Shown here: piece after piece, positions 10,993 to 62,525 of the stretch
How positions within the stretch are numbered: position 1 is the stretch's first letter
How the letters are laid out: every line of letters begins with the position of its first letter
Assembly (NCBI GenBank): GCA_965112735.1
Contig: OZ218953.1
Location: 1,488,001 to 1,552,000 of the forward strand
Length of the DNA: 64,000 nucleotides
Reading direction: 5' to 3'
Origin: Phaeosaccion multiseriatum
Taxonomy: Eukaryota > Protista > Ochrophyta, other classes
Notes under the pieces: model-generated
What the model saw: the letters and a program-made list of their open reading frames with translations, nothing else
Told to the model about the DNA's origin: nothing
The model's database searches: none
Position numbers and translations under genes: made by a program

Positions 10993-13900
10993 TTACTCGC
11001 CGGCCCACTTGTGCTCTCCTTCCTCGCCCCGCTTGACGTGTATTCTGTATGACGACCTTCGCGGTGCAGCTTCCTCCACCGGCACCGGTGATCGTAGCAT
11101 AGGTCCGCCTATCGGACTCGGAGGGAGACCGAGCATGGTGCACGAGTGGCTGGGGGCCGCCGGACGCGTTGGTGCTTCGGCAACACCAGCAGACGAGGAG
11201 CAAGGGGAGGCGCGGCCGACGGAGGAGCCGTCCACCTCCTTGCCTCGATAGCTGCGACTCAGGCGGCTGAAGTCGTCGTCGCTGCCCACGCAGCTCCAGT
11301 CCACCGGCTCCTCCGGAGTCATATTCTTGCACTCTCGGAGCTCGGGTTGTGTGTAGCGGTAGGCAGAGTCGTACTGCTCACCGTGGGAGCCGACGTGGTC
11401 CTCCTCCCCTCCTCCTCCTCCTCCTCCTGCTGCTGCTGCTGCTGCTGCTGCTACTCCGCCCTTGTTGCGGCGGTCCTTGGAGAGAGCCTTGTTCCTGCCC
11501 AGCTGCTGCGTCATGGGCAGGTACAGCTTTGTGTACGAGTAACCCGTGTACAGCACCATGAGCGGCAGAGGCACGAGCGCGCACATTACATACGTGCCCC
11601 CCTCCTTGACGAAGCACAGGAAGCCGATGAGCACAATCTGAGACAGCACCAGCCCAACAATGATGGCCCAAAACAGGGTGTTCCAAAAGAAGCGACCCCC
11701 CGTCTCAAAGAGCGGTAGGTAGAGGTACAGCAAGTTGTACCGGAACACCATCTCTGCGAGGGTGAAGTAGAGCACCCCAATGGCCGTCACGTAGGGAGCA
11801 ATGCACTGATACACCTGACACAGCATGAGCACGAGCAGGCTGCCCGCGAAGATGGTGGGGTAGAAGGGGAAAGTCGGCTGGTGCAAGCCCTCGCGCTCCT
11901 GGCGGGCGGTGCGGCGCGTGCTGTCGCGGTGCAGAAATCGGCGAATGGAGTGCAGGGCAAGCAGATGGAACTTGAACACCTCTGGCCCCATCAAGCTGAA
12001 ACTCATCTTGGTCAAAAGCACAGACATGGCGTACACCGAGAAGCCAGGGATGGTGTCTCCCAGGCTCTCCATGGCCTCGGCGGGCTTTGTGTAGATGAGG
12101 GTCAGCAGATTAAAGGCGCTCTGTCCGCTCACGAGCACGTACACATTCACCACATTGAACCAAAACAGCCGCACAAGAGTCACCCGCTGGCACATGCTCA
12201 CCGACTTGTATCCCTCGTACTTGGAGGCGAGCAGCATACCCACCGGAGAGAGCGCCGCCAACAGGAGAATGAGGATCCACGAGGGGAGAAACGATGTAAA
12301 CACCGCGCGCAGGATGGCGTTCTCGGCCCACTTGCGAATGACGGACACACGCAGCAACTCGTTTCGAGACTGAAACACGAGGTTCACGAGCGAACTCCAG
12401 TAGAGCGCAGCGAGCGTGAGGCCAATGTTGACCACGAACTGCCGGTGCCTGATCTGCGCCTCCGGGTTGTGCGTGTTGCTCCAGATAATGTCTCGCGACT
12501 CGGGAGCGGCCCTGCACACCGCCAGGCCCGGTCGGTCTGCCAGTAGCACCTGCGTGGCCGTGTTCTTGCCCGTCAGCGACTTAAAGGTGACAAATCCAGT
12601 GACGCCCTTGACACCAACTGTGAGGAAGCGAATCTCCTTGAGCAGCACGAGCAGCACGTCCCAAAAGCCCCCCACGAGGAAGAGCACAACGCGGTTGAGC
12701 GTAATGTTCTTCAGAATGACCGGCGACCCAAACTTTGCATCCTCGTAGTAACGATTGTGGTCCCTCTCCTTGCGCAGCGCGGACAGCTTCGCCGCCCCGT
12801 TTTGCTTGCCCCTACTCATGGCGCTTCTCCCGCTGGTGTGTGCGAGCAAGGCATCTCCTTCTGCGTGGCCGTCGTCTTTCTTATTGCTATTCCCACTCCG
12901 CGTTGTTTGCACATGCAGCTTGTCCTGGTTCACCAACTCGTCTGCCGCCCTCGCCAGCACATCTCGCCGCTTGGTCCGCGGGGACCCCAGCGGTGCAGCC
13001 GCCGACCCCTTCCGGAAGGGGAGCCAGCTGCCCAACTTCGCCCGCTGCGCCCCCTCTCCTCCTCCTCCTCCTCCTCCTCCTCCTGCTCCTGCTCCTCCTC
13101 CTCCTCGTCCTCCCCACGCGCCCTCTCGCCCCGCTGCTGCGGTGTGCGCCTCTCCTGTGTTGCGCCCCAGTGCTATGGTGTGAAAGCGGTGGAGAGGGTG
13201 GACAACGGCGGAGCGGAGGCTGCTGTGATGGTCCGGGGTGGCTCTTGCGTGGTGCCGCAGATGCAAGCCTTCTCTGCCTCCCTTTGCGGGGCTTGCAGCA
13301 GCAGCTGCCGCAGCAGCAGCTCCTTCTCCTTTTCCTTCCCCTGTTGTTGGTGGTGGTGCTGCTGCTCCTGCTGCTGCTGCTCCTGCTGCTCCTGCTACCA
13401 CCCAACCCACATGAGGCGACCCTCCAGACCCAGACGACCCCGTTGTATTGCTCTCCCCCCTGTCAAGGAGGGCAAAACCGCCACCACTCCCCAAGGGTTG
13501 GGGGCAAGCCAGAGCAGATGGGTGACGCCTTTCTGCGGAGACTGTGTCCTCAACCCCCTCTCCTCCTCCGCCAAGGCCAACTCGCGCCTCCTCCCCAATC
13601 GTGTGTGAAAGCACGCCGTCATCATCCAATACCAAAGCAGGGTCAGTGACAGCACCAGCACCAGCAGCAATAGTAGTAGCAGTAGACGACGGGTAGTCGC
13701 TGCAGTTCATATCCTCCATGCCAACAGAGCCACCGACGGTTGCGCTTCGCTCCCTGCACGTGCTCTTGCTCCTTTCTCCGCCTCGAGTCGATTCCCAGCC
13801 CCTGTGGTGACTGGCGCTCAAGTCCCGGCCCTTCTTGTCCCCGACGTGTGCCTTACCCGCCAGCGAGCTACCGAGTCTCTTGAGGATGCTCCCCATACCC

Positions 13901-16900
13901 TTCGCACTTGCACCGCCCTCGGCGAAAGAATGGTCCCTCGTGCCCCTCCACCCAATATATTCTCCACTATCTGAGCAATGCCTGTCTCCAATAGACCGAG
14001 AGTGGTGTAAATCGAAGCCGAAGCGGCCGGGAGCGACCTCCCAATCGTCGTTCTCCAGCGAGCTCTTGCTCCTTGCTGCTGCTTCTCCTCCTCCTCCTCC
14101 TCCCACAGCACCACCAAAGCTGGCGAACATGCCCCCTCCACCTCTCTCCGCCTCCCCCCCCAACGAGGCCGGTCCCCCCTCATTGGCCCCGAAGAGCACA
14201 TTCTCAGCGGGCCCTAGCTCAAGCAAATCGAGGTGCTCCAGCACTTGCTGGCCCATGCCCATGTCTACACCCAGCGCCTCCGAAGGCCGGAAGTACTCAC
14301 TAAAATCGTCATCCTCCTCCTCTCCCCCCACCTTCTTGCCATAATCCAGTGGAGCAGAGCCAGCACAGTTGTGGGAGTCAAATACCGGATCCAAGGTGTC
14401 GGGTTTCGTGTGCGGGTAGTACTCAGACTGATAGCCTTGGTGGTTCGTGGTGGCGTAGAGACTGGCACGGCGTGCACTCCCGCCGACGCTCGACAGAAGA
14501 GGCTGTGTATTCAAGGGGAAGAGAAGGAGAGAAAGGAGGAAAGGGATGAGAGGGCCGCTCAAAGGCTGGGGTGCGACCTGGCCTTCCACCACCCCCCCAT
14601 TGCGACGATTCTCAGCCCATGAGTCCAAGGAAATTCACAGAAAATTCGAAGGCCATGAGTCCCAAGAACGAGACTCGTTTCATCACTCTCCCTTCTTCAC
14701 AGCCACAAGCCCCGTCTCTCGCCCACTTTTCCCCCTTGTTTCTTGTTGCTTTCGGTCCTCGACTCACCCACTCCGCAGAGCACCCTCCTCGGATCTCGCG
14801 CCTCGAAGTCCGACCCTCCGCTGCCGCCTTGTGGCCGAGCTTCCCCTTTCCCCTGCCCTTCCCATTGCCCCCTCGCTCTGGCGAAGACCCGATACTCGCA
14901 GTCGACTTGGACCGGCGCCTGGTCGTGGTGATGCACGAGTCGCTGCTTCTCGAATCGACTTCACCGCTACTGCCACCACCACGTTCGCTCACGCTATGGG
15001 ATCGCCGCCTCTCCATCCCCCCCATGTCATGTCTTTGCTTTACTCCATCCTTCACGCCCTCGCTGGACTTCGGCTTCATCTCCTCTTTTACACAGTCCTC
15101 CTCCCGAGCCGCGGCGGTGGAGCAGCTTTGTCCCTCCACACGAATGCCCCCTCCTCCTCCTCCTTCTCCTCCTTCTTCTGGTGTCTCTCTTGTCGCCGCC
15201 CCTGAAGACCCCCTTGCGACAGCTGCGTTGGCGCTGGAGGTGGAGCAGGGACTGGCAAGAGCAGGGCCCTCCGCCTCGGCGTCCCCCAGGGGTATCGTTG
15301 CTTCGAACGGCGAGGGGGCACTGAGGAAGGTGCCCTCCGAATCCTGTCCCATCGAATTGTCCAATTCATTCCGCGGCAAAGTGGGCCGCGGAAGCTCAAG
15401 TCCAAGTCCAAGTTCTTGTTGCTCCTGCTGCTGCTCCTCCTCTTCCCTCGCTGCTATGCTTCTCGTTACGCTTCTCCTCCTGAGCATTGGGAGAGAAGCC
15501 GAAGCCATAGTGTGCCTTGGACCCAACCGAGGCCTGGGTCCCGCTTGCCCCCCTCCTCTCCCCCTACCCCCTCCCCTATAACCACTTTCACCCAAGCTTC
15601 CAGTCCCACTCCCGCCGATGCCGGGAGGGCCCGCATTGGCAAGCGCAGGGTCCATCCCCAGCGAGCGTAGCGCGTTGGCCTGTATGATGCAAAGGTCGCC
15701 ATTGTACCAGCTCAGGGCCCGGCCCAAGTCCAAGTTGGTCGCCTTGAGCTCCAGCGAGAGGTAAGGCACTGACAGAACACTGACGAAAAGCGGGTCCCGA
15801 TCCCGTCCCGCGGCCTTTCTGTCGACCCCTCGGCAGAAATTATTCAGAAAGACCTCCTCGTCCACTGTCAAGGCATGAAACTGTTGACAATGCAGCTGCT
15901 GCTGTTCACTCTGCTGCTGATGATGGTGCCATCTGGGGTTGGCGCTTACCCACGAAGAGCCTGCCAGTCCCGCCCGCAGGGTCGTATCGTGCCTTGCGTG
16001 CCTCTCCTCCGAGTCCACGGGAGATTCCCTTCCTCGCGAACGCTCCCCTCCTGCTGCTCCCTCCTCCATGGAGGCGGCCGGGTTTGAGCTGTGCTCGGCT
16101 TCTTCCTGGATACTCCAAGGCAACGGCCTTTGGCCGAACGCGTGAATCAGCGTCTTGCGCCTTTGCTTGGCCGTCCTGCGGCAAATACGCATCGTGGGTT
16201 CTCTGCCGAGGACGACCCTGCATAGCAGGCATAGCAGAGCAGAGCACAGCAACAGATGAGTGGGTACACAGTACACCCGGCTTCACCAAAAAGTAGACAG
16301 CATCAAATGAAGAGGCATAATTCCAGGAACTTTTTCTTTCTCAAGAACAAACAATCACTAGGGTGTGTGGTCCTCTCCGATAAAAAAACATCCGTCAAAG
16401 CGTCAGAAACACCACAGGGGCCCAACATCCCACACATCCCGCCCCCGCATCTCTTACCTCTCCTGCAGAGCCGCCTCGAGCTTGCCCCGGATGGACAGCC
16501 GCTTGGCAATGATGTGTCTCAACCCCGTCGCTTCTCTGGCCACGGAAGAAGTGAGCACGTCCCCTGGGAAGAGCCCGTCGAAGAGGGCCTGTAACATTAG
16601 GGGGGTGCGGCACTGCGTGGGAATCCGCTCCACCATGACCGTGTAGTTGGTCTGCATGTCGTAGCCGAGATCACCTGTGGAAGGGGAGGGGAGGGGGGGC
16701 ACGTTGGGGGGGCGGGGGGGGCGGTGGGAAGGAGGGGAGGGGAGGGGAGGGGAGGGGAGGGGAAGGAGGGAGGGATGGATGGCGTTAGATGCCTTGCGAA
16801 GGAGAGAAGCGGAGGGACGCTTCCATCGCAAAGTGGTCTCTCTCACACACATGCATACACACTGTATACATACTCTTCCCCCTCTGCTTTCAATAAAAAG

Positions 16901-25518: not shown

Positions 25519-27938
25519 ATGTGTGTGTGTGTGCTCTATCTCAGGGCTCTCTGGTGGAGGCCCGCGTGTGTCGCGCTCTGCCGCAGCTCGGGCCCGGCAA
25601 CTCCACGCAGGAATCTGCTGCCATCTCTGTGTCCGAGGCGCTGCCCTTCCTGGAGTACGACCTCCACAGACAACTCACACTCAAACTGAAGGTCATGGGC
25701 GCCAACGCCGCCTTCAACGTAGACACACAGGTGGGTGACCCCTTCAGCTCTATTTCGTTCCCTAGAATCGACCCGAGGATCACTATGACTATGACTGGCT
25801 GTGTATCTCTCTCACTTTGTGTATTTACATCCCTCTCTCTTCCTCTGTGTGTGTCTCCCATCGCCACTGCCCCCCTCTACACACACTCACACAGGTCCAG
25901 ATCGGCGCTGGCCTCATCATCACCACTATCCGCGCCACTGCCGTGTATGTTGAGGCTCTCCCCGCCCCCCCGCCCCTCGTCGTCAGCAGCAGCAGCGCGC
26001 TCAGAGCGGAGGTGAGGCAGTTACAGGCAAGGAAAGACAGGCTCGGTGGCACGCGCCGCTACCCCACTTGACAGGGTAGCAGGGACAGCAGCCAGTTTAC
26101 TTGCTTTCCTTTCCCTCTTACCTTTCTCCACCTCTTTCGCCCCTCTGTCTTTCTATCCTCTCCCCTCTCTCCCCCTCCCTTCTCTCTGTCTCGTACAATG
26201 ATCGAAGGGTGAGCGCGTATTCTCAGTCCTGCAGAGAAAGATTCAGCATGTTGCGGCCGCTAACCGCCAGCGCTTGCTGAGCCTCGCTCCTCCCCAGAAG
26301 GGCCTGAGCAAAAGGACCCACAGGGGCAGGAAGGTGTGTGTGGGGGGTGGGAGCGAACAGGGAAGAGGAGGGAACTGGAGAGGAGGGAAGGGGAGGGAAA
26401 GAAATGTAACTGAAAGTGAAACTGAACTGAACTGAACTGAAAGTCCTTCCTAAGTCAGTGCATTCCCTCCTCCTCCTCCTCCTCCTCCTCCTCCTCCTCC
26501 TCCTCCTCCTCCTCCTCCTCCTCCTCCTTCTCCTCCTCCTCCTCCTCCTCCTCCTCCTCCTCCTCCCCACCAGGGCACCGCGATGACCACGAATCGAACG
26601 CTGCCCCTGAGAGGAGGAGGGGGGGGCTCCGTAGCTCCGTACAAGAGCAAAAGAAGACTTTTGAAGAAGAAGAGGCAAGAACAGGGGCAGCAGCAAAGGA
26701 GGCGGGGGGAGGGCAAGGGGGCGGAGATGGGGGGCGGAGCGTCACGGTCACAGTCTATTCAGGCCGGTGGGGAGAGAAGGCCGCGGACGGCGAAGGGAGC
26801 ACGAGGCGCGAGGTCCAACAGCAGAGGCAAGACGAAGCGGACAAAGCAGGAGCAGCAGGAGGAGGAGGAGGAGGAAGGGAAGGAGGACGATAGCAGCAAG
26901 AAAGGAAGGAGGAATAAGGAGGAGAGGAAGAAGGGAAAGGATAAGTTGCAGAGCAGGCATGAGGGGGCACCGGCGGTTGGAGAGGAAGGAGAGGGAGCAA
27001 AGGAGGAGGAGGAGGAGGAGGAGGCGGGGGGGGGCAAGAGCTTGAAGGAAAGGCCTCCTCTCCGAAGAGAAACGTCTTCCTCTTCGTCCAAGAAGAAACG
27101 GGAGAGTAAGAGCCATGGTCATACCAAGGGCAAGGACAAAGACGACGAAGAGAAAGAGAAGGAGAAGGGGAAGGACAAGGAGAAGGATAAGGAGGAGGAG
27201 GGGGTAGGCGCAGAAGGAGGAGAAGAAGGAGGAGAAGGAGAAGGAGGAGGAGGGGGAGGAGGAGGAGGAGGAGGAGGAGGAGGAGGAGGAGGAGGAGGAG
27301 GAGAAGGAGGAGGCGACGACCCACTCAGCGCCAAGGCCAAGGCAAGAGAAGAGAAGGAGAGGAAGGTCGAGAAGAAGAGAGAGAAGAAGGAGAAAGAGAA
27401 GGAGCGGCAGAAGGCGAAGGAGGCGGCCAAGGAGAAGAAGAAGGAGGAGGAGAAAGAGAAAGAGAAGGAGAAAGAGAAGGAGAAAGGAGGCAAAAAGGAC
27501 AAGAAGGACTCAAGTGGACAAGGGATGCTTGGCAGGATGATGATGTCCAGTGAGAAGAGTGAGAAGAGCGGCCTCGGTGAGGGAGGAGGAGAGGCCAAGA
27601 AGGAGGCAAAGGGCGGCACTTCCTTGGTATCAATGTTCAAAATGGGCCTGGAAAGGGCCAAGGGCGGTGGAGGAGGAGGAGTCGGGGGAGGGGGAGCCGG
27701 AGGAGGAGAAGGAGGAGGAGGAGGAGGAGGAGGAGTAGCAGCAGGAGGAGGAGGAGGAGGAGCAGGAGCATCAGCAACAGCAACAGCAGGAGGAGAAACA
27801 AAAGCGGTAGGAGGAGAAGCAGCAGCAGCAGGAGCAGCAGCAGCAGGAGCAGCAGGGTCAGCAGAAGGAGCGGTAGGAGCTGCAGGAGGGGCAACAGAAA
27901 AGGAAGGACTAGCAGCAGCAGGAGCAGCAGCAGCAGCA

Positions 27939-27987
<49 letters not shown>

Positions 27988-30590
27988 GAGGAGGAGGAGG
28001 AGGAGGAGCAAGCGTGGATGTTACGGGCGAGAATGGAGACGAGGGAATGGAAAAGAAGGAGAAGAGTGAGGAGGGAGGGCAAGGCAGTCAACAAGTGGAG
28101 GGCGGGAAAGTAGCAGCGATAGCAACCGCTATTGTGCCGCCAGCAGCGCTGGCACAAGCAGTGGATGTAGGAGCAGGCGGGGGTGCGAGGGAAGAAGGAA
28201 AGGAAGGGCAAGACGCAGCACCAACAGTTGCAGCAGAACGGGTGCGACTCCCGTCCATCTCTTCGGCGTTGTCCGCACTTTCCTCCTCGGGTCCTTCTTC
28301 TGAGGACGACGGGTCCTCCTCCTCTTCTTCCCCCTCTTCTGGTGGGTCCTCTGCTTCCTCCTCTTCGTCAACATCATCTATATTGGGCTCGGCCTCTTCC
28401 TCCTCTTCCTCCTCCTCTTCTTCGCCTTCCTCCTCTTCCTCCTCCTCGTCTTCTTCCTTATTCTCATCCTCTTCGGAGGAAGATGCAGAGGAAAGCAGCG
28501 AAGGTGAAGGTGCAAGTCAGGAGAAAGGAGGCCTCGTAGCGGGAGGGGCCCATGAGCAGCAGAAAGAGGCCGATGGGGCAGCAACGGCGGTAGCAAGAGG
28601 AGGAGGAGGAGGAGGAGGAGGAGGAGGAGGAGGAGGAGGAGGAGGAGGAGGAAGGGAGGTAGAGGCAGAGGCGGGGGCGGAGGAAGATGAGCGCCTCTCC
28701 AGGAGGAATTCCTCCCGCTCTCGAGGGGATCGCATTGGCACGGGAAGCAGCGCCGGAGGAGGAGGTGTGGCATCCACTGAGGAGGAGGAAGAGGAGGAGG
28801 AGGGGGGGTACGTAGAGGAGGAGGGGGACGACGAAGAGGAGGAGGACGAGGACGAGGAGGAGGGGGAGGGCGGAATCAACGACGTGCGGGGCGTGGATGC
28901 CTTTCTCGATATGCTGGGGGAGGGGCGCGAGGAGGAGGGGGATGAGGACGACGAGGAGGAGGAGGACGAGGACGAACAGGCCATGTTGGAGCGAGAGGAG
29001 GAGGAGGAGGAGGCGGACAGAGTGCAGCAGCGAAGGACGAGGAAGCGCAGGTTCAGGGACGACCGCAAGGTGTGTGTGTGTGTGCGCGCGCGTACGTTAT
29101 GTCATCCGTCCATGTGTGTTCTCCCTCTTCCTCTCGATCCCTATTTCTCTCTACCTCTTCCTCGCCCTCTCTTATGATCTCTCTCTCTCACACCCTCCCT
29201 CTCTCCTCTGCCTGCGGCTCTACCTGCGGCTCTGCCTGCCCCTTTTCAGCCGTTCGTCTTGGATGTCGACGATGATACTGATGAAGACAGCCTCACCGTG
29301 CTCTTAGACCGGCAGGCACCCCCGGTAAGATCGCGACACCTTCTTCTTCACTGCCCCCTCTTGCCGTTGTGTTGTGTCATTTCCGTCTTCGCTCGAAGCC
29401 CAACTCAACTCGAGGGCGGTGTGAAACAAGTGCACTGCTCTTCAAACGCATACCGTAACGCCTCTCCTCTCCTCTTGTTCCTACTCTACTCTTGCTGGTA
29501 TGTGTGTGTGTGCGTGTGTGTGTGCGCGTGCAGGGCATCATCCTGTGCACGTCGCACCGCCCCCCCCTGGGACACGGGCAGTGGCCCACCTGCACGCAGA
29601 CGGCAAACGCGCAGATGGTGGTGGCTCTGAAACGCGCCAAGGCCGTGGACAACGTTCCTGGGCCCTCGGGGGCGAGGTCCACCCCCACTCAGTATCTCAC
29701 CAGGTGCGTGCGTGGGTGCGTGCGTGGGTGCGTGTGTGGGTGCGTGCGTGGGGTGAGCGGTTGCGTCTCTTTTGGCACTCTGTCCGTCGGTTGGTCGGTC
29801 GGTCGGTAGGGAAGGAGGGAGGGAGGGAGGGAGGGAGGGAGGGAGGGAGGGAGGGAGGGAGGGAGGGAAGAGGATAGAGGATGGAGACCAATGGGGGCTT
29901 AGGGGGGGGCTCAAATGGGGACCGAGTGGGGACAGAAGTGCTCACCATCTCATGTGCTCCGCCCGCCCTTCCCCCTGCCCCTCCCTGTCTCTCTCACCCT
30001 CTCGTTCCTCAGCCTGTACAGCGATCTCTACGCCCGCCTGTGCTTCAAACTGCGCTACCTCGTGCCCTGTGCACTTTGCGGCCTCACCACACGCGTCAAC
30101 CTCACCAGCGACGGCCTCGTGGAACTCGTGGCCACGGGCATGGCACTGCTCATGGACGCGCCGTCTGGTGCCATCCTCCCCATGCCCATCCCGCCCACCA
30201 TCAAGGGCCAGAGCCAGACCCACCGCCTTCGGTCCAGCCAGCACAGCCAGCACAGCCAGGAGGGCCCTGCTGGTGGTAGTGGTGGTAGTGGTGTGCGTGT
30301 TGAGGGAGGCAGTGGTAGTGGCAGCGGTCAGCACAGTCACAACCACGGCCATTCGTCGCTCGGGGGCAGTGTGGCGTACCATCGAAAGCCTTCCGTGGCG
30401 GCGTCTCTCCTTCCCCGAGAGGTGGAGCAGTGCATCCTGACTCAGTTGGTGGACGGGAGGAGAGACCTAGTGGGGGGGGTGGGGGTGGGCCAGCAAATCC
30501 AGGGTCAGGTAGGGGGTGGAGGCGGTGGCAGAAGTGAGGCAGAGTTGATTGGGTTGGTGGGGTCTGGCGGAGGGTGGGCAGACGAAGAGG

Positions 30591-30624
<34 letters not shown>

Positions 30625-31227
30625 CGTCACACATCGCATACGCAAGAGGAGTGGGGGGAGCAGTGCAGAGCTGACGGGGATGGCCCTGCTGGCGACGGCC
30701 CGCCAGCCCGGAGATCATCAACACGGGCAGCAGGCGCACCGACAGATCGGCGGCTTCGGGGGCGTGAACTCGTCTACCTCTGCCTCGCCGTGGCTCGAGG
30801 GAACTTCTCCCCTCCCTCCACCGCCCTCCTCCATCCCCTCGCCAGGAAGGGAGGAATCCGCCTTCGATGGTAGCGCTGCTTCTGCTGCTGGCCCCACGAC
30901 TCCGATTTTGCCCCGTCCGATTACTATGAGTGAGTGAGAAGGGATGGGGGAAGGAGGGACTTTTTCATGCTAGCGCGACTCGTATGGGTACATGTATCAC
31001 CGGAGGGTTCACATACTCTACTCACTGTATCAACGCAGGGTTCACATCCTCTACTCTACTCGGTCCTCACGCTTTCGGTCTGCCTTTGTTTTGCTTGTTC
31101 TGCCTTTGTTTTGCTTGTTCTGCCTGCCTGGGTGGGTGGGTGGGTGGGTGGGTGGGTCGTCGCTTTGCGTTTGCTCTTGTTGTGGTGTCCACGCCTACCT
31201 TCTGCTGCGGTGGCCTGTCCACCTGAC

Positions 31228-44925: not shown

Positions 44926-45933
44926 TCAGTCCGTAGGGCTGGCGTGGTCCAATGCGGCCTCGAACAGCGCCTCCGCCAGCACAAGCTCCACCTCCTCTCC
45001 CAGCGGTCCCAGGGCTCTCAGAGCCAGCTTTCGGACGTGAGCCCTCAAGGCCTCTGGGGGCTCGTGGACAAGGGAAGTGGTCCAGGCCAGCGCTCTCGCT
45101 ACAGCCAACACACCCGTCTTTTGGTGCTGCTGCCGCTGTCGCTGTTGCTGGCGTGGCTGCTCCAACGCCTTGAGCGCGTGAGGGAGCACGAGACCACGAA
45201 GGAGCAACGCGTCAGCCAGTGATTGGCTCTGGCAGTGGTGGATGAAGGCGGCGAGGAGGTGCCAGTCCAGAGTGGACACGTCCAAGTGACGACGCTCCTC
45301 ATCAAAGCAGACCGTCCATTCGTAGGCCTGAAGCTCTCGTGCCCTCCTCGTGAGGGGCAGGGGAAACAGAGACAATGGGACTGCCACGTTCGTTTTCGAC
45401 TGGCTCTGATACAGCACCCCATTTCTCTCACTGCCCCTCCCCATGCTCTCCTCGCCAGCGGCAGGGATGGCCAAGACCTTTTGCAAATCGGAGCAAAATG
45501 CAGCAAGTGCGCTCTCCACCACCGCCTCACCGCCTGCAGAAGCTCCGCCAGACGGCCTTTTGCGCGTAGCAATACCCGGAGTACTAGCCGTGGTAGTCGT
45601 GACCCGCTCACAAGGTGCTGGTGGGACAATGAAGGCAGGCGCGACGAGCACCGCGGTATGTAGGCCAAACACGGCAGGCACCAGCTCCCCGTCGTCCAGC
45701 CCTGTCAGCCCCCGCACCTCCTCATCAGTCTCCACGAACGGCAGCCTCATCCACTTCAATTTCAACTGTGTGCCCTCCTCTGGACCCGCTTGACACAGCT
45801 GGCTCCCCCATGAAGTGTTGTCCTCTTCACCTTCCGCATCTTCTGATGTTCGTCGCTGTTCCTCTACAATGGCTCGAATAGAGGGGGGCAGAGAAGCAAG
45901 GGCTTCATCGTCGTCCTCGCTCCCGACCTCCAT
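44926..45933 (-). CDS. Hypothetical helical protein (weak resemblance to the FANCE C-terminal domain)
   Basis: 335-aa ATG-initiated ORF downstream of a poly-A tract, with a Leu-rich helical C-terminal half (LLLRGLVLPHALKALEQP). It may contain introns or have further exons. Confidence 0.5.
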   Translation of the reverse strand: MEVGSEDDDEALASLPPSIRAIVEEQRRTSEDAEGEEDNTSWGSQLCQAGPEEGTQLKLKWMRLPFVETDEEVRGLTGLDDGELVPAVFGLHTAVLVAPAFIVPPAPCERVTTTTASTPGIATRKRPSGGASAGGEAVVESALAAFCSDLQKVLAIPAAGEESMGRGSERNGVLYQSQSKTNVAVPLSLFPLPLTRRARELQAYEWTVCFDEERRHLDVSTLDWHLLAAFIHHCQSQSLADALLLRGLVLPHALKALEQPRQQQRQRQQHQKTGVLAVARALAWTTSLVHEPPEALRAHVRKLALRALGPLGEEVELVLAEALFEAALDHASPTD

Positions 45934-46112
45934 TTCTCTCTTCGATCTTCTCTCTCTTTTTTTTTTTTTTGCTGCTGGTCGACAACGAGTGGCGGAAACC
46001 CCCTTTCCCTTGTCCCAGCACCGCTGAGCGATTGAACCAAAAAAGCAAAAAAGGCATAGCTTTCCCTCCCTCCCTTCCTTCCTCCTCTCCTCGCGTTCTT
46101 GCCAAGGACCCT

Positions 46113-48037
46113 ATGCATCGAGGCAGGGAGGCGGGGGCGGCGACGGAAGAGCGGCCGGGAGGGCGAAGGAGGAGGCCAAGGCCTGCTTCTTGGCGGCCTC
46201 AGAGCCTGCTGCTGGGAGTGGCGGGGCTGCTGCCTCTTGGCGCCGGACTCTTGGTGGCGGACCTCCAGCCCTGCAAAGGAGGTGCTCATCACCAGCAGAG
46301 ACAGAGGCAGGCGAGGAGGGAGGCAGCGTGCGCCACAAGTGACCAGGGGAGGGAGTGGAGGAGGGCTTGTGGCAGCAGTGGCAGCAGCAGCAGCCTCTGC
46401 AGCAGGAGCCTGAGTTGCAGTGAGGACAGCATGAGCCACAGTGAGGATAGCGGTACCGCTAGTGGTGGCAGTAGCAGAAGCAGCAGGAGCAACAGGAGCA
46501 CAAATAGCGGCATCCGCAGAGGCTCCCGCAACGGCAGAAATCTCGGCCAGAGCAACAGTAGCAGCAGCGGCAGCAGCAGCGGGAGGAATAGACGGAGCAG
46601 CCGTATGAGCAGCAGTAGGAGTAGCAGTGGGGTACGCACTAGCAACGGTGGCAACTTTGCCACGCTCCAGGAGCAGCAGGGGTGTCCCCACGTGCTAAAA
46701 ATCGAGGAGAAGGTGATGTACCTGACCAAGGAGCTTGGGCTGACCGAGGAAGAGGTGCAGGGCATTCTCCAAGTGCCAGGCCTCCGAAAGGTGGTGCGGG
46801 TAACGAGCCTGAGTAAGATGCGCTCTGTGGTGGCCGTGCTGACCGAAGAGATGGAGGGCGCGACGCCGAGGGAAGTGGGCCTCGCTCTGCCGAGACTGCT
46901 GGGGCCGAGCATAGAAGGCACCATCAAGCCGAGGTTGGCGCGAATGAAAGAGCACGGTATCCGGCCGGACTTCCGCATGCACCAAACAAAATTTAGGCAC
47001 AACTTTCGGAGCGAGGACTTCGATCAGTGGTTGCTCCAGGCACTGCGCCAACAGCAGCAGCAGCAGCTGCGAGCGGCTGGTGGGGGCGAGGGAGGGGCTT
47101 TACCCGAGGACTCCCTCCTGGAGGAAAAGAAGCAGTGGTTCATGCGCGACTTGGGCTTGACCGAGGAGGAGTGGAGCGGCCTGTTCAACTCGGGCCGGAG
47201 AGCCAAGGCTATCCAAGAGGTGTCACTGGACAAGATGAGATCGGTGGCTGCTCTGTTGCGGGAGGAAATGAGCGAAGCCACTCCGCGGGCGCTGGGGCTG
47301 GCGCTGCCTCGCTTGATCAAGTCCAGCATTGAGCGCACCATAAAGCCTCGACTGGCGCGGATTAGGGACATGGGCATCTCGCGACCCCAATTTCGCACCT
47401 ACGCCAGGGCGGTGTGCAGCGGCGACTTTACAGACAAGGAGTTTGAGGCCTGGGTGGCGGAAGGTCCGCGCCTGACTGGGGCCGAGAGCATGGAAGAGAA
47501 GAGGGTGTGGTGCACCAAGGCACTGGGGCTGAGAGAGGAGGAGTGGGAGGGCTTTATGAGCGACAAGAACACCGCCAAGAGGCTTCGAGGCACCTCCCTG
47601 GCCAAGATGAAGGCGTTGGTGGAGGCGTTGGGGGACGGTATGGAGGGCGCCACACCAAGGGAGGTGGGGAGGATGCTTCCCCACTTGGTGTACGCGGTGA
47701 TTGGCAACACCGTCAAGCGGCGGCTGGAGTGGATGCGGGAGATGGGGGTGGAGCCGTCCTTCCACACGCACGCGAGGAGGCTGTGCCTCAACGGCAACGA
47801 TGAAGCCTTCAAGACTTGGGTCCTCCGAGGAGCTCCAGCGCGGAGAAATCAGGTACGCCGTGGGGGGGGTCAAGAGGTGGCGCGGGGAGCGGCGAGGGAG
47901 AAGAGAGGTGGTCCACAGATTGCCCAGAGCAAGTTGTTCTTTTGCTCCTTCCTCTCCCCGCCGCGCGGAGGACTTTGTTCCATGCTCCCTGCGGCGCTCT
48001 CTCTGTCGCTCACATCTTTTCTGCTCCCATGTGCCCC

Positions 48038-48080
<43 letters not shown>

Positions 48081-49231
48081 CCCGGCAGGACACAGCGGCA
48101 CTGGCGGAGAAGAAGGCATGGTTCACGGTAGAGCTGGGGCTCTCGGAGTCCGAGTGGGCGAACTTGTTCCTCTCTGCCACGTGGACGACTAAGCTGAGGA
48201 GCGCCAGTCTGGAGCGTATGCAGCATCTGCATGCCACTCTCGTGGAGGGGATGGCAGTGGATGGGGTGGCCCCGCGGGAGGTGGGACTGCAGCTGCCCTC
48301 TCTATTAGGCCCGAGCGTGGACAATGTGGTAAAGCCGAGACTGGCGCGGCTTAGGGAGTTGACGGGGGCGCGGCCTGACTTTCGAGCGCATGCTCGGGCG
48401 GTGTGCAAAGCGTCGTCAGCACTGATCAAAGACGAGGCCTTTGAGGCGTGGCTTGCAAAGGGGGCGCCCGCCGTGGAGAGGGGGTGGGAGGGGATCGATG
48501 CGAAGCGGCGCTTCTTTGTGGATGAGCTGGGCCTGACCGAGCTCGAGTGGGCGGCCTTTTTCCAGGAGCCGGAGGTTGTGGACCGCCTGCAAGGGGTGCC
48601 CTTGTCCAGGATGCGGGCCATGGCGGACGTGCTTCTCTACGAGATGGACTTTGCTACCCCGGAGGAGGTGGGGTTAGAGTTGCCGGCCATGCTCGGGACC
48701 AGCGTGGAAACGACGGTCAAGCCCAGGCTGGCGCGGATGAGGGAGATGGGCATTGATCCAGTGTTTCAGGAACACGTGTACAGGCTGAGGGGCAGGTACA
48801 GCAACAAGTGCTTCGAGGCCTGGCTCTTGAGGGGTACACCGGCGCAGAGAATGAGGGAAAAGAGACTGTGGTTCATGGAAGAGCTCGGCTTGCTGCAGGA
48901 CGATTGGCTGGACTTTTTCGAGCTGCCTTCCTGGGAGAAGAAGATGCGCAGCACCAGCATCGGCAAGATGAAGGTGCTCGCCGAGTTGCTTCTGAGAGAG
49001 ATGAAGGGCGCCACGCCACTGGCAGTGGGGCTGGAGCTTCCTCGGCTCTTGGGGGTGAGCGTGGGGCGGACGGTGATTCCCAGGCTCGCCCGTCTGAGGG
49101 AGGAGGGCATCACGCCAAACTTCGAGCTGCATGCCGTGAGCGTGTGCAGCTGCTGCCTGAACGAGGTGGCCTTCGAGCGCTGGCTTGCGCAGGTGGTACT
49201 GGCCGAGAAGGAGGGGGAAGACAGACCATAG
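46113..49231 (+). CDS. mTERF-like protein made of six ~115-aa tandem modules (2 exons; intron 47853-48088)
   Basis: Six copies of K.[WF]F..[ED]LGL.E.EW...SL.KM......L...M..ATP.EVG..LP.LLG.S[IV]..T[IV]KPRLAR..E.G..P.F..H......FE.WL. The LGL and P.L..S....PR elements are mTERF-type. A phase-0 intron joins the two long ORFs. Confidence 0.8.
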
Positions 49232-49745: not shown

Positions 49746-52700
49746 ATGCGATTAGAGTGGAGGCCGCGGTGGCGGCCGAGTGAAAGGGACGGGAAGGAGG
49801 ATGTACAGGATGAAGACGGGCTTACCACTCCCAGGAGGAATAAGTATACAGTTGTGAGAGCGATTGGGGCTGGCTCCTTTGGGTCCGTCGAACTCGTCTC
49901 GCTGAACGGAGATGGGCGGCTCTATGTCAGGAAGGTGAGAGAAGTCGAGGGAGGAGAGAGAGAAGGGGGGTTGGGGTTGGGTTTTGGCTGGGCGTGGCTG
50001 CCTTTCCTTTTGACGTTTACCCATTATTCTATTGTTCTCCCCTCTTGGCTTTCATGCTCCGCCCCTGTCTCCGGACGTGAATTTCATGGTGTAAAGGTGG
50101 TCAAAGACAACTCGGCCAATAAAAAGGCAAAGGTCGAGGCCATGCGGGAGATTTGGGTCCTCAAGTCCCTCAAGCACCCCAACATTGTCAGCTTTGAAGA
50201 GGGCTACAAAAGAGACGCCCAAGGAATGGCCGGGCGGGGCGGCGGCGGTGCCAGCGGCGGACAGCTGTGCATCATCATGGAGTACTGCGAGGATGGAGAC
50301 TTGGGACACGCCATCTCCCAGGCCAGGAAGAAGGGCCGTCTCATTGCGCAGGAGACGGTGATGGACTGGTTTGTGCAGCTCCTCTTCGCCCTCAAGTACC
50401 TACACGGGAAACACATCTTGCACAGGTCAGTGGGCGGCTTCATTCGAGGTCGTGGGCTGCAGGCATGGGCGACAGGAGTGTAACAACTGCATTGATGTAC
50501 CTTCCGGGCCAGAGACGTTTGCTGAATCGCTCTCTCTCCCTCCCTCCCTCCCTCCCTGCCTTCCTTCGTTCCCCAGAGACTTGAAGCCGCAGAACTGCTT
50601 CCTCACCAATAAGGGAAGAGTGCTAAAACTCGGGGATTTCGGCATCACTAAGGTGGGGCCATACCCATACATGCTCACATACACGCTTTGCTTGACGGCC
50701 CGAGAGAGGTTGGGGTCCGAGCACGGAGGGGAGGGAGGGCGCAGTGAGACGGGGTAATAAGTGTCCCGCACCCACACCCTTTGATGTTGCACCTGGCTCT
50801 GATCTCTCCCCTCCCCTCTGGCCCTGCTATCTGCTATCGCTACCTCCGTTTGGTTTGTTGCTCCTCCCCCCTCTGCCCCTCTGCGGCCCGTCGTGGGCAT
50901 CGCTCTCAGGAATTGGACAACACCGCCGCCAACGCGCTGACAACGATCGGAACCCCTCTGTACTTTAGCCCGGAGATCTGGTAAGTGCGTAAGTGCGCCA
51001 GCGCCAGAGGATTGTCGAACAAGCGGCCCTGTAGGTCTTTCGCACGCCCCTTCCGCCTCGAGGAAGTAAAAGTGGCGGCGGCAAAGAGCCAGCTGATGCG
51101 CTGTACGTATCCGCTCTCACACCGCTCTACACTCCGTGCTCTTTTGACTGTTGCTCTCGCTATCCCTCTCGCTCTCACTCACACCAGCCAAAACGAACCG
51201 TATGGGTTCAAATCGGACGTGTGGGCACTCGGTATTGTTTTGTACGAGCTGTTGGCGCTACAGGTGAGCGAGAGACGGAGCCGTTAAGGGTCGCTCACGC
51301 ACACACGCCCGCGACCGGGGGGGATAAGGGAGAGGGCGCCGCTTGCTCTTGACCTGAGGAAAAGAAAGCCCAAACGTAAAACTGCCCCTCTCTCTCTTCT
51401 CTCTCTCTCTCTCTCTGTGTGTGTGCGTGCTCTGCAGGTGCCCTTCCAGGCCAACAGTCTCAAGGATCTGATTCAGAAGATTCTCTTCACCAAGCCCTCC
51501 GCGCCCAACAAGGAGAAGTACTCGGTGGGTCCGGCTTTGCTGACGTTTGTGGGCACGTGAGCATTTCGGTTGGCATGTGCGCTCATCGCTCTTTCCCTCT
51601 GGCTCTCTCTCTCTCTCATTCACCTCTCAGATGTCCATCTTGCGTCTGGTGGTGGCCATGCTTGCCAAGGCCCCTGTTCGGCGGCCCTCCGTGAAGGAGC
51701 TTCTGCAGAACGAATACGTCCAGACGCACGTCAAGGGCTTTGCCACACGCTACGCCTCCCTCATGGAGTTTGGTGCCTCTCTGCGCCGCACCACAGGGGA
51801 CGGACAAGTGTTGGAAGAGAGCGATACCGATGGAGCTGCCCGGCTGCAAGGAGTACGGTACAGGGGCAGGAGCGGCAGGTCGTCGCCAGCCCGACCAGGT
51901 GGCGATGGTGATGATGATGGAGCAGATGACAGAGACAATCGCGCGGGTGGTGAAGAGGAAAGCAAGAGGAAAGGTCGAGGTGCAGATGGCCATAGAGGGG
52001 AGGCGAGACGAGACTACGCCTCTGAAGACTCACAAGTGGCGGCAAGGGCGGACGAAAAGGTGGCGGCAGCAGCAGCTGTACAAGCGGCAGTCGACGCCGC
52101 CAATGGTGGGCGGGGCCGACATCGCGACGATGCAACTCCGAGTTCTCATGAGCAGGGCGCGGGGGGGGGGCGTATGGAGGCGAAAGGGAGGGTAGGTGAG
52201 GAGGAGCAGCAGCAGCAGCAGCGGGAGGAGGAGGAGGAGGAAGAGGAGGAGGAGGGTGCAGTTGGCGGAGATGGCGCCATCGGTTTGGACCTTCGGGCGC
52301 TGCCGGATAGCGTACTGCAGATGCACGAAGCTGCGCGGAGTCAAGGGCTCACGGCCACTTGCGAGGAGCTTGTGGGTGTGGCGTTGCTGGAGATCGGGGC
52401 GGTGCCGGAGGGAGGGGAGGAGGGGCACCAGCGGCTAGGGAGTGGGGAAGGGGGGCAAGTGAGGGAGAAGAAGGAGGGGGAGGAGGGAAAACCGGACCCT
52501 GAGGATAGGAGGAGGCACTCTCGATTACGTCAGGGGCTGCAAGGTGGACGAGAAAGCAGGCAGCATAGAGGGCAACAGGATGAAAGGAGAGCCAAGACCG
52601 AGGGGAGCACGCCGAGCAGCGGTAGGAGAACCAGCGGCAGAAGCAATAGTAGTAGTAATAGTAGTAGTAGTAGTAGTAGTAGTAGTTGTAGTAGCAGGAG

Positions 52701-53323
52701 CGACAGGCTCAACAACACGCGGCGCCCGAGGGTGAGCATGGTTGATGCCGCCGAGGCCGTGGATGCCGCCCATGCCATCCATGCAGTGGCGAGTGGGGCG
52801 CGAGGGGAGGGCTACAATGCTGCGGCCGCTGAGTCCTTCACACCACCGCGGAGGGTTTCCGAAGCGTCGAGCGAGGCGAGGGCGACGACGACGACAAGGA
52901 GGAGGAGGAGGAGGAGGAGGAGGAGCCATCTTCGCCTCCAAGCTCAGCCCCCCTGGGCACAAGGCGATGCGGAGCGTGAGGGTGAAGAAGAAAAAGGAGG
53001 GGGAGGGGGCGGCTCCTCGAGGGCTTCCGACTTGTCGCAGCAGAACAGCGCTCCATCCGCCCGCCACCGCCACGACGACGACGACGACGACAACGATAGA
53101 CTGAGTCCCCAACAGCCGTATGACCAACAGTCCTATGATGGCCCGGAGGCGCGTCGTCGCCCTCCTACAAACAGTAGCAGGAGCAGGAACAGCGGTGGTG
53201 AGACAAGTCCAGCAGGCGGGGTGGGGGGTGGGGAGGAGAGGGAGGAAGGGGGATACCACCGTGCGGCCATTAGCAGCAGTGAGGATCGCCGGAGAAGGAA
53301 GGAGGAGGAGCGAGAGCATCATG

Positions 53324-53363
<40 letters not shown>

Positions 53364-54653
53364 CCAAAGCATGCGGGACAAGGAGAATGTGGGGACAGAC
53401 GCCGTCGAGGTGCAGTCGGCTCGAGCGACGACGGCGGACGCGGGGCGGAGGAGAGAAGGAGAGGGAGGAGGGATTCCGAGTCGAGGAGGAGGAGGAAGGA
53501 GGGAGAGCGAAAGTCCTCGGGTACTGGCCAGGCTCGGGGCACTGCGGGGGGTTGCTGGTGACGTCGTTGGGGCCCGGGGTGGTGGGGGCAAAGAAGTAGC
53601 CACACCAGCAGCAGCAGCAGCAGCAGCACTTGGTGATAAAGCAACAGCAGCAGCCGCCGCTCAACCTTCCCGCATCGTGACGCGACAAAGCGTGAGTAAC
53701 AGCATCAACCGTTATGCGGGCAGAACCCCGGGGGGCGACTACGTGTCGCACAAACGCACCAGTCCCAACCAGAGAAGCAGAAAGGGCTCGTCTGGCACCA
53801 TCGCCGGTGGCAATGGTGGCAGTGGTAGAGGTAGCGGCAGCTCCTGGTTGGGTTCTGATCCTGAAACACCCAGAGGAGGAGCGAGGGGCGCTTCTTCCGG
53901 CCCTGCTTCTCCATCTTCTGCTTCCCCTGCTGCTGCGGCCACTGGGGGGGGCAGAGGAGCTGGCACCGAACGTCGCCCGAGGCCCTCAATTCTTGTCGAC
54001 GAAGGACGACTGGGAACCCCGACTAGCGGTGCACCCCCCTCGGGATCGTCTGCGAGGAGGTCTGAAGCTTCAATAGAGTCCTTTGCAGACGAGGAGAGCG
54101 AGCGGCAGCAGTGGGAGGAGCAGGTGAGTGAGTCATTGCATGCGTGAGGGAGGGAGGGAGGGAGGGAGGGAGGGAGGGAGGGAGGGAGGGAGGGAGGGAG
54201 GGAGGGAGGGAGGGAGGGAGGGAGGGAGGGAATGAGTAAAAAAGCGAGGAAATTCTGCTCGTCAAACAGCTGTGTTAGGGCAGGCCCAAGGGATTAGCCA
54301 AGTTTTTTTTTTGTTTCGTGCCTCTGCCCTCCTGGGCAGTCAGTGTCTCTCTCTCCCTCTACGTCACCTTTGCCACTGCCCTCCGAGCCGACAAGTCCAT
54401 GTTTCCCCCAACTGACCCCGACGTTTGTCTCTCTCACTCGCTCGTCGTATAACCACCGCAGCGGGTCCAAGAGCAAGCAAGGAGGAGGGAAAGGAGTCGA
54501 GGCTCTGGCGGTGGTAAGAGGGTAAGCCGAGAGAAGCTGGGCAGGTTGGGGGCCGCCATCCTCAATCGCAGCCTGGATGGGACGCTCGAGACGGAGGAGG
54601 AGGTCAGGGAGGCCGTCGCCAGCATGCAGCGCAACATGGAGGACAAGAAGCAG

Positions 54654-60907: not shown

Positions 60908-62525
60908 ATGGCGCTTCAAATGCTTGTTCAGTCGGTGCTTCCGGCAATCCTCGGAAGTCAGCAGCAGCCCCAGGGACGGGGACGGGACGACGGGCAGAGA
61001 GCTGCTGGAGAGTCAACTGCAGGTGGAATCGTAGGGAGCGCTGTGGAGCGACTGGGGGAGTGGGGGGAAAGGGCCCAAAAGGTCGCCATCGCCGCGTTTA
61101 AGATCCTCGTTGTGTTGCAGGTGCTTTTCCTCTTCGCGGCCTTTTGCTATGCCTTTGTCTACTGGGCCATTGTGCCGGACAGCCTTCACACGCGGACGCT
61201 CATTTTCGACTACGGCATGCGAGGCGCCCCCGAGTACAACTTGGGGCATCAACCCACCATGATGCCGGGCAGTACCCGCAGCAGCGCTCGTGGTGCTTTC
61301 GACGGCAATACTTGTGCTGCTGACTTGGGAGACGGCAGTTGCCATGCAGGAGATCGGAAGCAGAACCATCCCGGCCTAGACCATCTCCCGGTATACGATC
61401 CGTTTCCCAAGCTCGCAGCCCACCCTCTCCGCTCTCCGGTGGCCGTACTCGACCTCCTGACGGATATCACTTGGACCCCCGGAGGGGTGATGGAGCAGGC
61501 GTTCCGGGAAGCGAAAGAGGCCGCTGAGCCGCGCAGCGTCAAGAGGAAGAGGGAGGAGCGGCGCAAGAAGCACACGCAGAGGCAGGCGGAACGGCAGAAG
61601 GAGAGGGAGGCGAAGGCGAAATCAGAAGGGGGTATAGGAGCCATAGCAACCTCGTCGCAGAGTGATATCATGGGTACGGCGGCGAGGAGGGTGGGGGAGG
61701 ATGAAGCACATGCAGCCGCGGGAGCAGCAACAGCAGCAGCAGCGCTGAGGGACCCCTCCGACAGGTGAGCGAATGTTTCGGCACAAGGAAGGGAAAGGTT
61801 GGGGCGGGGAGGGAGGGGAGACGGTTCCCTCCGGGAGACGGTTCCCTCCTCGATGACAACACACCGCTCCCATATGGATAACACATCACATGCCTCATGC
61901 CACGTACCCACGTCTTAACTATGGAACAATTGTTGGCTTCTGTCTCCCTTTCCGCCGCTGAAATAAATACATTCCCCCAATCCTTGGTGTATCCCCTCCA
62001 AGGCTGCTGGCGGCCGGGGTGAAGTACAACGTGGGTCTGGAGCTAGAGCTGCCCCTGTCGGAGAGTAACGCCAAGATGGGGCCCTTCATGGTGTACGTGA
62101 CGCTCTTGGCGCAGGATGGAGTCGTCCTCGGTCACAGCGCCAGGCACGCCATGCTGTCCTACACCTCCCCGGGGCTGAGGTACATGCGCATGGCCTGCCT
62201 CGCCCCCCTCTACCTGCTTGGCTTGAAAACAGAAGGTATCGTACGTACCCGAAGTGGTTGTCTTGTGTCAGTTCAGTTCCCAGGAATGCTTGACTTGTCA
62301 GATATGTATAAGCTTGGCCACCTCCAACCCCTCTTAATACATTTTCTATGTGCCCAACCTCCTTTCCGCCCTCTTCTGCTTCTGATTGTGTTCCCCCCAA
62401 CTCAGCCGAGAAGATTTTCATCACGAGTTTTGACCACCTCTTGGAGCTCGAGGACTATCCCCTCACCAGAATAGAGGTGAGTGGGTGGGTGGGCGGTCGG
62501 GCAACAGTAGCAAGCATTAGTAGTT

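Follow-up and report, generated by a model that had tools for sequence, protein, structure and literature searches.

We describe a gene of the ochrophyte alga Phaeosaccion multiseriatum that encodes an mTERF-family (mitochondrial transcription termination factor) protein carrying six tandem modules, each the apparent counterpart of a piece that canonical relatives carry once, at the C-terminal end. The gene lies on the forward strand at positions 46113–49231 of a 64,000-nucleotide stretch of contig OZ218953.1 (assembly GCA_965112735.1, contig positions 1,488,001 to 1,552,000), which we call the window and whose numbering is used throughout. Our preferred reading, to which we assign a probability of about 0.65, is that this is an intact nuclear gene whose product has 18 mTERF motifs arranged in six end-piece modules that arose by duplication within the lineage, and that the protein would be imported into an organelle and bind DNA or RNA there. 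The protein departs from the usual mTERF architecture in two respects: it has six terminal-type motifs rather than one, and its structural model lacks the canonical global superhelix. The layout is a variant of a known family, with two- and three-copy precedents in brown-alga relatives.

Six Tandem Units in One Predicted Gene

We delimited the six units with a unit alignment and a unit hidden Markov model (HMM), supplemented for units 4–6 by the structural model described below. Unit 1 (46701–47117) spans 139 residues, including a Gln/Gly-rich linker of ~30 residues to unit 2, and matches positions 1–121 of the unit HMM with 179.6 bits. It is followed by unit 2 (47118–47489, 124 residues) and unit 3 (47490–47852, 121 residues in exon 1, with a linker that runs on into exon 2). 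The second exon contributes unit 4 (48101–48493, 131 residues), unit 5 (48494–48850, 119 residues, acidic with an isoelectric point (pI) of 5.2), and unit 6 (48851–49228, 126 residues, acidic with a pI of 5.6 and a short C-terminal tail). Across lengths of 119–139 residues, the six-unit alignment has a mean column identity of 54%, and pairwise identities over a core of ~113 columns range from 38 to 50%. The least similar pair, units 1 and 6 (38% identity), is related far beyond chance (BLASTP E = 3e-30).

The initial annotation of this stretch, made from sequence alone, had named the starts of six tandem units, a set of conserved scaffold landmarks, and two variable segments, and each of these observations is borne out. 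All six starts are present. The alignment contains 18 invariant columns, including LGL, the P of ATP, LP, the RL of PRL, and F..W. Column entropy is lowest in the segments T-P-x-E-V-G-L and K-P-R-L-A-R-M and peaks at columns 22–35, after the E.EW helix, and at columns 99–112, before F..W, where the variable segments had been placed. Basic positions are conserved across units in helices 1, 4, and 6 (h1, h4, and h6 of the model below). The linkers from each F..W helix to the next E-K-K/R helix measure 10–30 residues, and four of the five open with a turn in which Pro follows Gly (for example R/K-G-A/T-P-A); the exception, between units 1 and 2, is a Gln/Gly run. No tandem repeat at the unit period was found at the DNA level, as expected for units this diverged, and a six-frame scan of the window revealed no further mTERF copies.

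The units are split over two open reading frames (ORFs), units 1–3 lying in the frame of ORF 45969–48131 and units 4–6 in ORF 47816–49231. Because GT, polypyrimidine, and AG signals occur exactly at the frame change, we read the two as one spliced gene, 46113–47852 joined to 48080–49231, with a predicted product of 963 residues (~108 kDa, pI 9.6). Exon 1 (46113–47852, 580 codons), assigned from the ORF frame and the sequence, would encode the N-terminal region and units 1–3, and exon 2 (48080–49231) would encode the rest of the unit 3–4 linker and units 4–6, ending in a TAG stop at 49229–49231. The predicted GT..AG intron between them (47853–48079, 227 nt), the only one in the gene, has the donor CAG/GTACGC at 47852/47853, a CAG acceptor that ends at 48079, and a polypyrimidine tract that is a perfect (CT)18.5 microsatellite at 48041–48077. 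The exon ends on both sides fall at codon boundaries, so that joining 47852 to 48080 splits no codon and restores both the frame and the unit period. The linker between units 3 and 4 that is created across the splice opens R-G-A-P-A, like the other linkers. The 2.5 kb of coding sequence is free of stops and frameshifts and has a GC content of 58–62%. The ATG at 46113 is the first after a divergent upstream gene, with no ATG in any frame in the region 45933–46113. A second in-frame CAG acceptor ends at 48088, 9 nt downstream of the first; alternative use of the two 3′ splice sites could add or remove three residues in the unit 3–4 linker.

Assignment to the mTERF Family

By sequence and by local fold, the protein belongs to the mTERF family, as had been proposed from its motifs. 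The Pfam mTERF profile (PF02536/IPR003690) matches the exon 1 product with 39.1 bits and the exon 2 product with 34.4 bits, against a gathering cut-off of 23.1, and four of the six units match it singly at E ≤ 1, with unit 1 alone (24.2 bits) exceeding the gathering score. In every matching unit, the best stretch falls at the C-terminal end of the family model, at profile positions ~215–306 of 314. From this placement, each unit is read as the counterpart of the C-terminal end piece of a canonical mTERF. Whereas the usual mTERF has a single terminal motif at its C-terminus, six terminal-type motifs occur in this chain.

We also considered a one-repeat-one-base reader of the pentatricopeptide repeat (PPR), octotricopeptide repeat (OPR), or transcription activator-like effector (TALE) type, and rejected it. 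No PPR, OPR, or TALE Pfam matches occur at E ≤ 10, the Foldseek matches to TAL effectors are weak (probability 0.13–0.41, template modeling (TM) score ~0.2), and the variable stretches are 12–15 residues long, compared with the one or two defined positions in such readers.

Predicted Structure of the Modules

We obtained an AlphaFold2 (AF2) model of units 4–6 using a 29-row alignment (A2), in which the 26 single-module homologues are all aligned to unit 4. The mean predicted local distance difference test (pLDDT) value is 90.2, all five models reach at least 89, and the predicted TM score (pTM) is 0.57; a single-sequence prediction of the same units was unusable (pLDDT 51). Values below 50 are confined to a loop in unit 4 (model residues 106–108) and the unit 4–5 linker (126–128). 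Each unit contains eight helices, which we grouped by eye and read as three mTERF motifs: h1–h3, h4–h5 plus the P-x-L-L turn, and h6–h8. The model thereby shows the tandem motifs of ~30–40 residues, two α-helices plus a short third helix, that characterize the family. The earlier description of a unit as about two motifs plus a cap needs correcting on this point, since the third motif, of terminal type, appears complete; in the model, the "cap" is the second and third helices of that last motif, with the variable loop preceding the F..W helix.

A Foldseek search of the PDB with the model returned human MTERF1 entries as the eight best matches (probability 0.87–1.0, ~340 aligned columns, 14–16% identity), with TM scores of 0.24–0.31 and a root-mean-square deviation (rmsd) of ~13 Å. 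MTERF4 and MTERF3 follow, with TM scores of 0.32–0.35 normalized by target. The local fold thus resembles solved mTERF structures. Despite the collinear alignment, the rmsd to MTERF1, MTERF3, and MTERF4 is 9.5–13.8 Å. A TM score of ~0.3 corresponds to about one well-superposed unit of three, and we therefore regard the model as locally collinear with mTERF but globally not an ordinary solenoid; at the level of this model, the single continuous superhelical solenoid of MTERF1/3/4 is not seen. The best structural match, human MTERF1 (PDB 3MVA, 3MVB, and 3N6S; probability 0.99–1.0, TM score 0.27–0.31, 15–16% identity), has its three-helix motif nine times, the number predicted here for three units, but MTERF1 is a single uninterrupted superhelix wrapping duplex DNA, unlike the model of the window protein.

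These results agree with the initial annotation in that the protein does not appear to form one ordinary mTERF solenoid, its model failing to superpose on MTERF1, MTERF3, or MTERF4. Its picture of beads on a string fares less evenly: the low-confidence linker between units 4 and 5 fits it, whereas the junction between units 5 and 6 is a confidently predicted two-residue break or turn (pLDDT 85–95).

Relatives and Origin of the Modules

We built a profile (A1) from the six units and used it for an exhaustive search of 1.84 billion representative proteins, which gave 172 matches at E ≤ 1e-3. The best scored 86 bits, whereas a self-match would exceed 1000 bits; neither this protein nor an orthologue is therefore present in that collection. 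JGI metagenome contigs, scanned with the exon 1 and exon 2 products, yielded no relatives, a word-indexed protein search with units 1–3 found nothing at E ≤ 1e-3, and the same kind of search with the three-module Choristocarpus protein described below (P0005) found two distant proteins only. Five other long ATG-initiated ORFs of the window likewise have no exact match in a collection of 15 billion proteins, so the absence reflects an unsampled genome.

We rescanned the best 150 of the 172 matches locally, counting an end piece wherever the profile was matched to at least position 108. The end piece occurs once in 70 of these 150 proteins, twice in 7, three times in 2, and more often in none. 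Where it is single, it sits a median of 29 residues from the C-terminus, which corroborates the proposal that canonical mTERFs carry one C-terminal cap. The six-fold end piece is exceptional and the layout is rare. An HMM search for relatives of variable unit number, suggested in the initial annotation, thus yielded proteins with one, two, or three end pieces but none with more than three among the best 150 of 172. The same numbers qualify its remark that the design was unrecognized: rarity holds, while Choristocarpus, Phaeothamnion, and Chrysoparadoxa have relatives with two or three modules. Our literature search returned neither an account of this kind of layout nor one of stramenopile mTERFs.

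Twenty matches were looked up, and all eight that carry a source name come from ochrophytes of the brown-alga and PX-clade neighborhood (Ectocarpus, Choristocarpus, Discosporangium, Phaeothamnion, and Chrysoparadoxa). Three of the nine relatives with two or three end pieces are among those looked up for source, and these too are ochrophyte algae. The closest in layout is an unnamed protein product of Choristocarpus tenellus (CAM9431374.1, P0005, 538 residues) with three tandem modules at residues 150–268, 282–400, and 418–538. Like those of the window protein, its modules are of the C-terminal three-motif type ending PRL...G-I-x-P-x-F...F..W, with linkers of the Gly-Pro-Ala type after F..W, and it is collinear with units 4–6 (24% identity, E = 4e-13). 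It differs in having three modules rather than six, in the ordinary mTERF motifs that precede its first module, and in modules whose motif 1 still has the canonical P-x-L-L signature; they were duplicated independently. Proteins of Phaeothamnion confervicola (CAM9704643.1, P0009) and Chrysoparadoxa australica (CAM9856990.1, P0019) have two F..W end pieces per chain, that is, two tandem mTERF domains, but these domains are longer (~185 residues) and contain more motifs than the window units. In Ectocarpus siliculosus (CBJ33384.1, P0108) and Ectocarpus fasciculatus (CAN0051243.1, P0023), the last ~110 residues match positions ~3–114 of the unit profile with the same landmarks, but the end piece is single and C-terminal, after a run of ordinary motifs.

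We inferred a maximum-likelihood tree from 38 modules. The six units of the window protein group in a single clade (support 100/100) on a long branch, and those of Choristocarpus make up a separate clade of three (99/95) whose neighbor is a single-cap protein from Ectocarpus. Between Phaeothamnion and Chrysoparadoxa, the first caps pair as orthologues, as do the second caps, which points to an older, fixed two-domain state and not an array. Together, these groupings indicate that the capped module was duplicated independently at least three times and that the six copies originated within the lineage of the window protein. We rejected a block duplication of units 1–3 into units 4–6, as the pairs 1/4, 2/5, and 3/6 show no excess similarity over the remaining pairs and branching among the six units is almost star-like.

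Several metagenome- or Logan-derived matches (P0001, P0004, P0007, P0010, P0021, and P0022; 1022–1161 residues, "mTERF domain-containing proteins") have one full unit match near residues 350–510, followed by several hundred residues with more mTERF motifs. This group of ~1100-residue proteins appears to be a different kind of multidomain mTERF.

The N-Terminal Region

The 196 residues that precede unit 1 (46113–46700, forward strand) are of low complexity and rich in Ser, Arg, and Gly (43, 30, and 26 residues, respectively; pI 11.8), with numerous RS and SR dipeptides, consistent with the Arg/Ser-rich N-terminus of ~195 residues that had been noted in the initial annotation. A Pfam search of this region found no domain. 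AGC/GCA trinucleotide arrays underlie it, and it may be poorly constrained. From its start, the region consists of a charged segment of 30 residues, a hydrophobic stretch at residues 31–49 (46203–46259, forward strand, limits set by eye), and a long Ser/Arg-rich, acid-poor region. The best 15-residue Kyte–Doolittle window starts at residue 34 (mean 2.1), and the hydrophobic stretch could form the core of a putative signal peptide or anchor.

Proposed Mechanism and Alternative Explanations

Known mTERF biology (PMC7826268, PMC3471360, and PMC4005652) comprises import into organelles and binding of organellar DNA or RNA. By analogy with those characterized proteins, we propose that the window protein would be imported into the plastid or mitochondrion and would bind organellar DNA or RNA. 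Its module is the C-terminal end piece of the family, in which the third motif closes with the K-P-R-L helix, then a turn of the form Gly-x-x-Pro-x-Phe and the amphipathic F..W helix. The copies stem from successive internal duplications in this lineage, and Gly/Pro-containing linkers of 10–30 residues join them. The basic helices (the E-K-K/R start, S-L-x-K-M-R, and K-P-R-L-A-R-M-R) would contact the nucleic acid backbone. Six semi-independent three-motif modules could provide multivalent binding or an extended footprint, and the divergent h2–h3 and h7-loop segments would differentiate one module from another.

Several points weigh against this reading. The start codon and the splice are predicted from the sequence. 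The N-terminus is ambiguous and weakens a simple picture, as a bipartite plastid signal, a presequence, and an RS-like domain would each be consistent with it; inspection by eye did not show a clear ochrophyte plastid signal, an aromatic residue is missing after the hydrophobic stretch, and acidic residues occur within the first 14. Units 5 and 6 are net acidic, unlike a simple nucleic acid-binding surface. No orthologue that keeps the six-module state was found in the protein collections or the JGI metagenome contigs. Sequence searches of the PDB with the exon 2 product and with the unit profile returned no mTERF match, the unit-profile null being the one that tells against us. The tight turn between units 5 and 6 suggests that some neighboring units may be rigidly packed. 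Finally, the relative orientation of the units is taken from one AF2 model with a deep alignment for unit 4 only, and the inter-unit geometry is the least certain part of that model.

In one alternative, the protein is one continuous superhelix of 18 mTERF motifs. The "cap" would then be the third motif of a three-motif super-repeat produced by tandem duplication, the units would not act as individual beads, and the protein would bind a single long stretch of nucleic acid, about twice the footprint of MTERF1. The eight helices of each unit do fit three complete motifs, ~340 of 376 residues are collinear with the nine-repeat MTERF1 in Foldseek, and the two-residue junction between units 5 and 6 is well predicted. 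However, a pLDDT of 90 is accompanied by low global TM scores (0.27–0.35) and large rmsd values to MTERF1, MTERF3, and MTERF4 and by a pTM of only 0.57, and the linkers vary from 10 to 30 residues with Gly/Pro or Gln/Gly runs. The F..W helix moreover ends the chain in the 70 canonical relatives and hence does not need a following motif. We consider a continuous superhelix unlikely, though deserving of attention. Human MTERF4 binds NSUN4 through its C-terminal part (complex 4FP9), and the window protein could likewise be a multivalent adaptor in which each C-terminal module recruits a partner enzyme and nucleic acid contact is secondary. The duplicated piece is specifically the C-terminal module, MTERF4–NSUN4 entries are among the Foldseek matches, and the acidity of units 5 and 6 would suit such a role; yet there is no known partner, nor does the window content suggest one, the conserved basic helices are kept in all units, and the likeness to MTERF4 is weaker than that to MTERF1, making an adaptor quite improbable.

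The N-terminus raises the further prospect of a nuclear or cytosolic RNA-associated protein, with an RS-like domain in front of mTERF modules in a non-organellar role. Its 43 Ser and 30 Arg residues with many RS/SR dipeptides would fit, as would the lack of a plastid or mitochondrial signal clear to the eye. Transit peptides, however, are typically Ser/Arg-rich and acid-poor too, and the hydrophobic stretch at residues 31–49, with a hydroxylated and basic region behind it, has the outline of a bipartite signal. The low-complexity region overlies trinucleotide arrays and may be under little constraint. In addition, all characterized mTERFs are organellar (PMC7826268, PMC3471360, and PMC7909791), and we judge this non-organellar role improbable. 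It is very improbable, lastly, that the six-unit chain is an artifact of the gene model, whether two adjacent three-unit genes or a decaying, functionless duplicate. The splice is predicted from the sequence, an in-frame ATG at 48029 precedes unit 4, and the exact protein and any orthologue are absent from the protein collections. Nevertheless, canonical splice signals sit at the frame change with exon ends on codon boundaries, the linker across the splice shares the R-G-A-P-A start, the 18 invariant scaffold residues are intact in every one of the six units and no stop interrupts them, and the absence of the five other window ORFs points to an unsampled genome.

Returning to the preferred reading of six end-piece modules, a bolder extension of it would treat the C-terminal three-motif block of this ochrophyte mTERF subfamily as a copyable module that folds and binds autonomously, that has been strung together independently at least three times, and whose six copies here each read a different short element in the genome or transcriptome of an organelle. 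We regard this extension as rather unlikely. The first variable segment corresponds to the conserved P-x-L-L part of motif 1 in canonical relatives, which has degenerated here, so relaxed constraint is as good a reading of the variable segments as specificity. The closest published idea is the pTERF family, prokaryotic mTERF-like tandem-repeat DNA binders with 3–11 repeats and proposed module-wise DNA recognition (PMC11417379). In both systems, mTERF-like helical units are arrayed regularly in tandem and vary in number, but pTERFs consist of bacterial single-motif repeats that are 9–18% identical to eukaryotic mTERFs, whereas what is repeated here is a block of three motifs from a subfamily of eukaryotic mTERFs.

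mTERFs rank with the principal regulators of organelle gene expression that the nucleus encodes, and their choice of targets is poorly understood. A protein composed of end pieces is a natural test of whether the three-motif block folds and binds alone and whether copy number and divergence tune specificity. Were the bolder extension true, this would be a modular reader built from mTERF triplets instead of single repeats, and if single modules have separable preferences, the block could serve as a design unit for nucleic acid binders. If not, the protein would illustrate internal duplication within a repeat family, and its interest would lie mainly in annotation and in how ochrophyte organelle factors evolved.

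Other Features of the Window

Upstream of the mTERF gene and divergent from it lies an ATG-initiated ORF of 335 residues with no Pfam domain (44926–45933, reverse strand). The ~180 bp between the two start codons (45934–46112) is pyrimidine-rich, with a T13 run and TCCC repeats, and as a compact gap between divergent starts is likely a bidirectional promoter. Just downstream (49746–50754, forward strand) is a multi-exon protein kinase gene in at least two ORF pieces (Pfam Pkinase, 70 bits), followed at 51547–54147 (forward strand) by an 866-codon open frame that starts with an apparent kinase-domain end and continues as sequence of very low complexity, with poly-Gln, poly-Glu, poly-Arg, and poly-Ser runs. 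The 64-kb window has neither tRNA genes nor matches to Rfam families that reach the gathering score.

Farther away, an ORF of 1211 residues (10996–14628, reverse strand) encodes an RSN1_7TM domain (OSCA/TMEM63-type channel); its best relatives are fungal DUF221 proteins with 28–30% identity, which suggests that the protein collection represents the source lineage only thinly. An ORF at 29915–30934 (forward strand) has a C2CD5-type YbjQ-like domain (42.8 bits), and another at 60908–61765 (forward strand) has a weak seipin-like match (22.9 bits, under the cut-off of 25). A putative gene at 26583–29177 (forward strand), an 864-residue ATG ORF without a Pfam match, is nearly all homopolymer or low-complexity sequence (Gly runs of up to ~25, Ala, Ser, Glu, and Lys/Glu) and coincides with the strongest purine skew of the window (GC skew 0.32 and AT skew 0.48 at 26001–28000).

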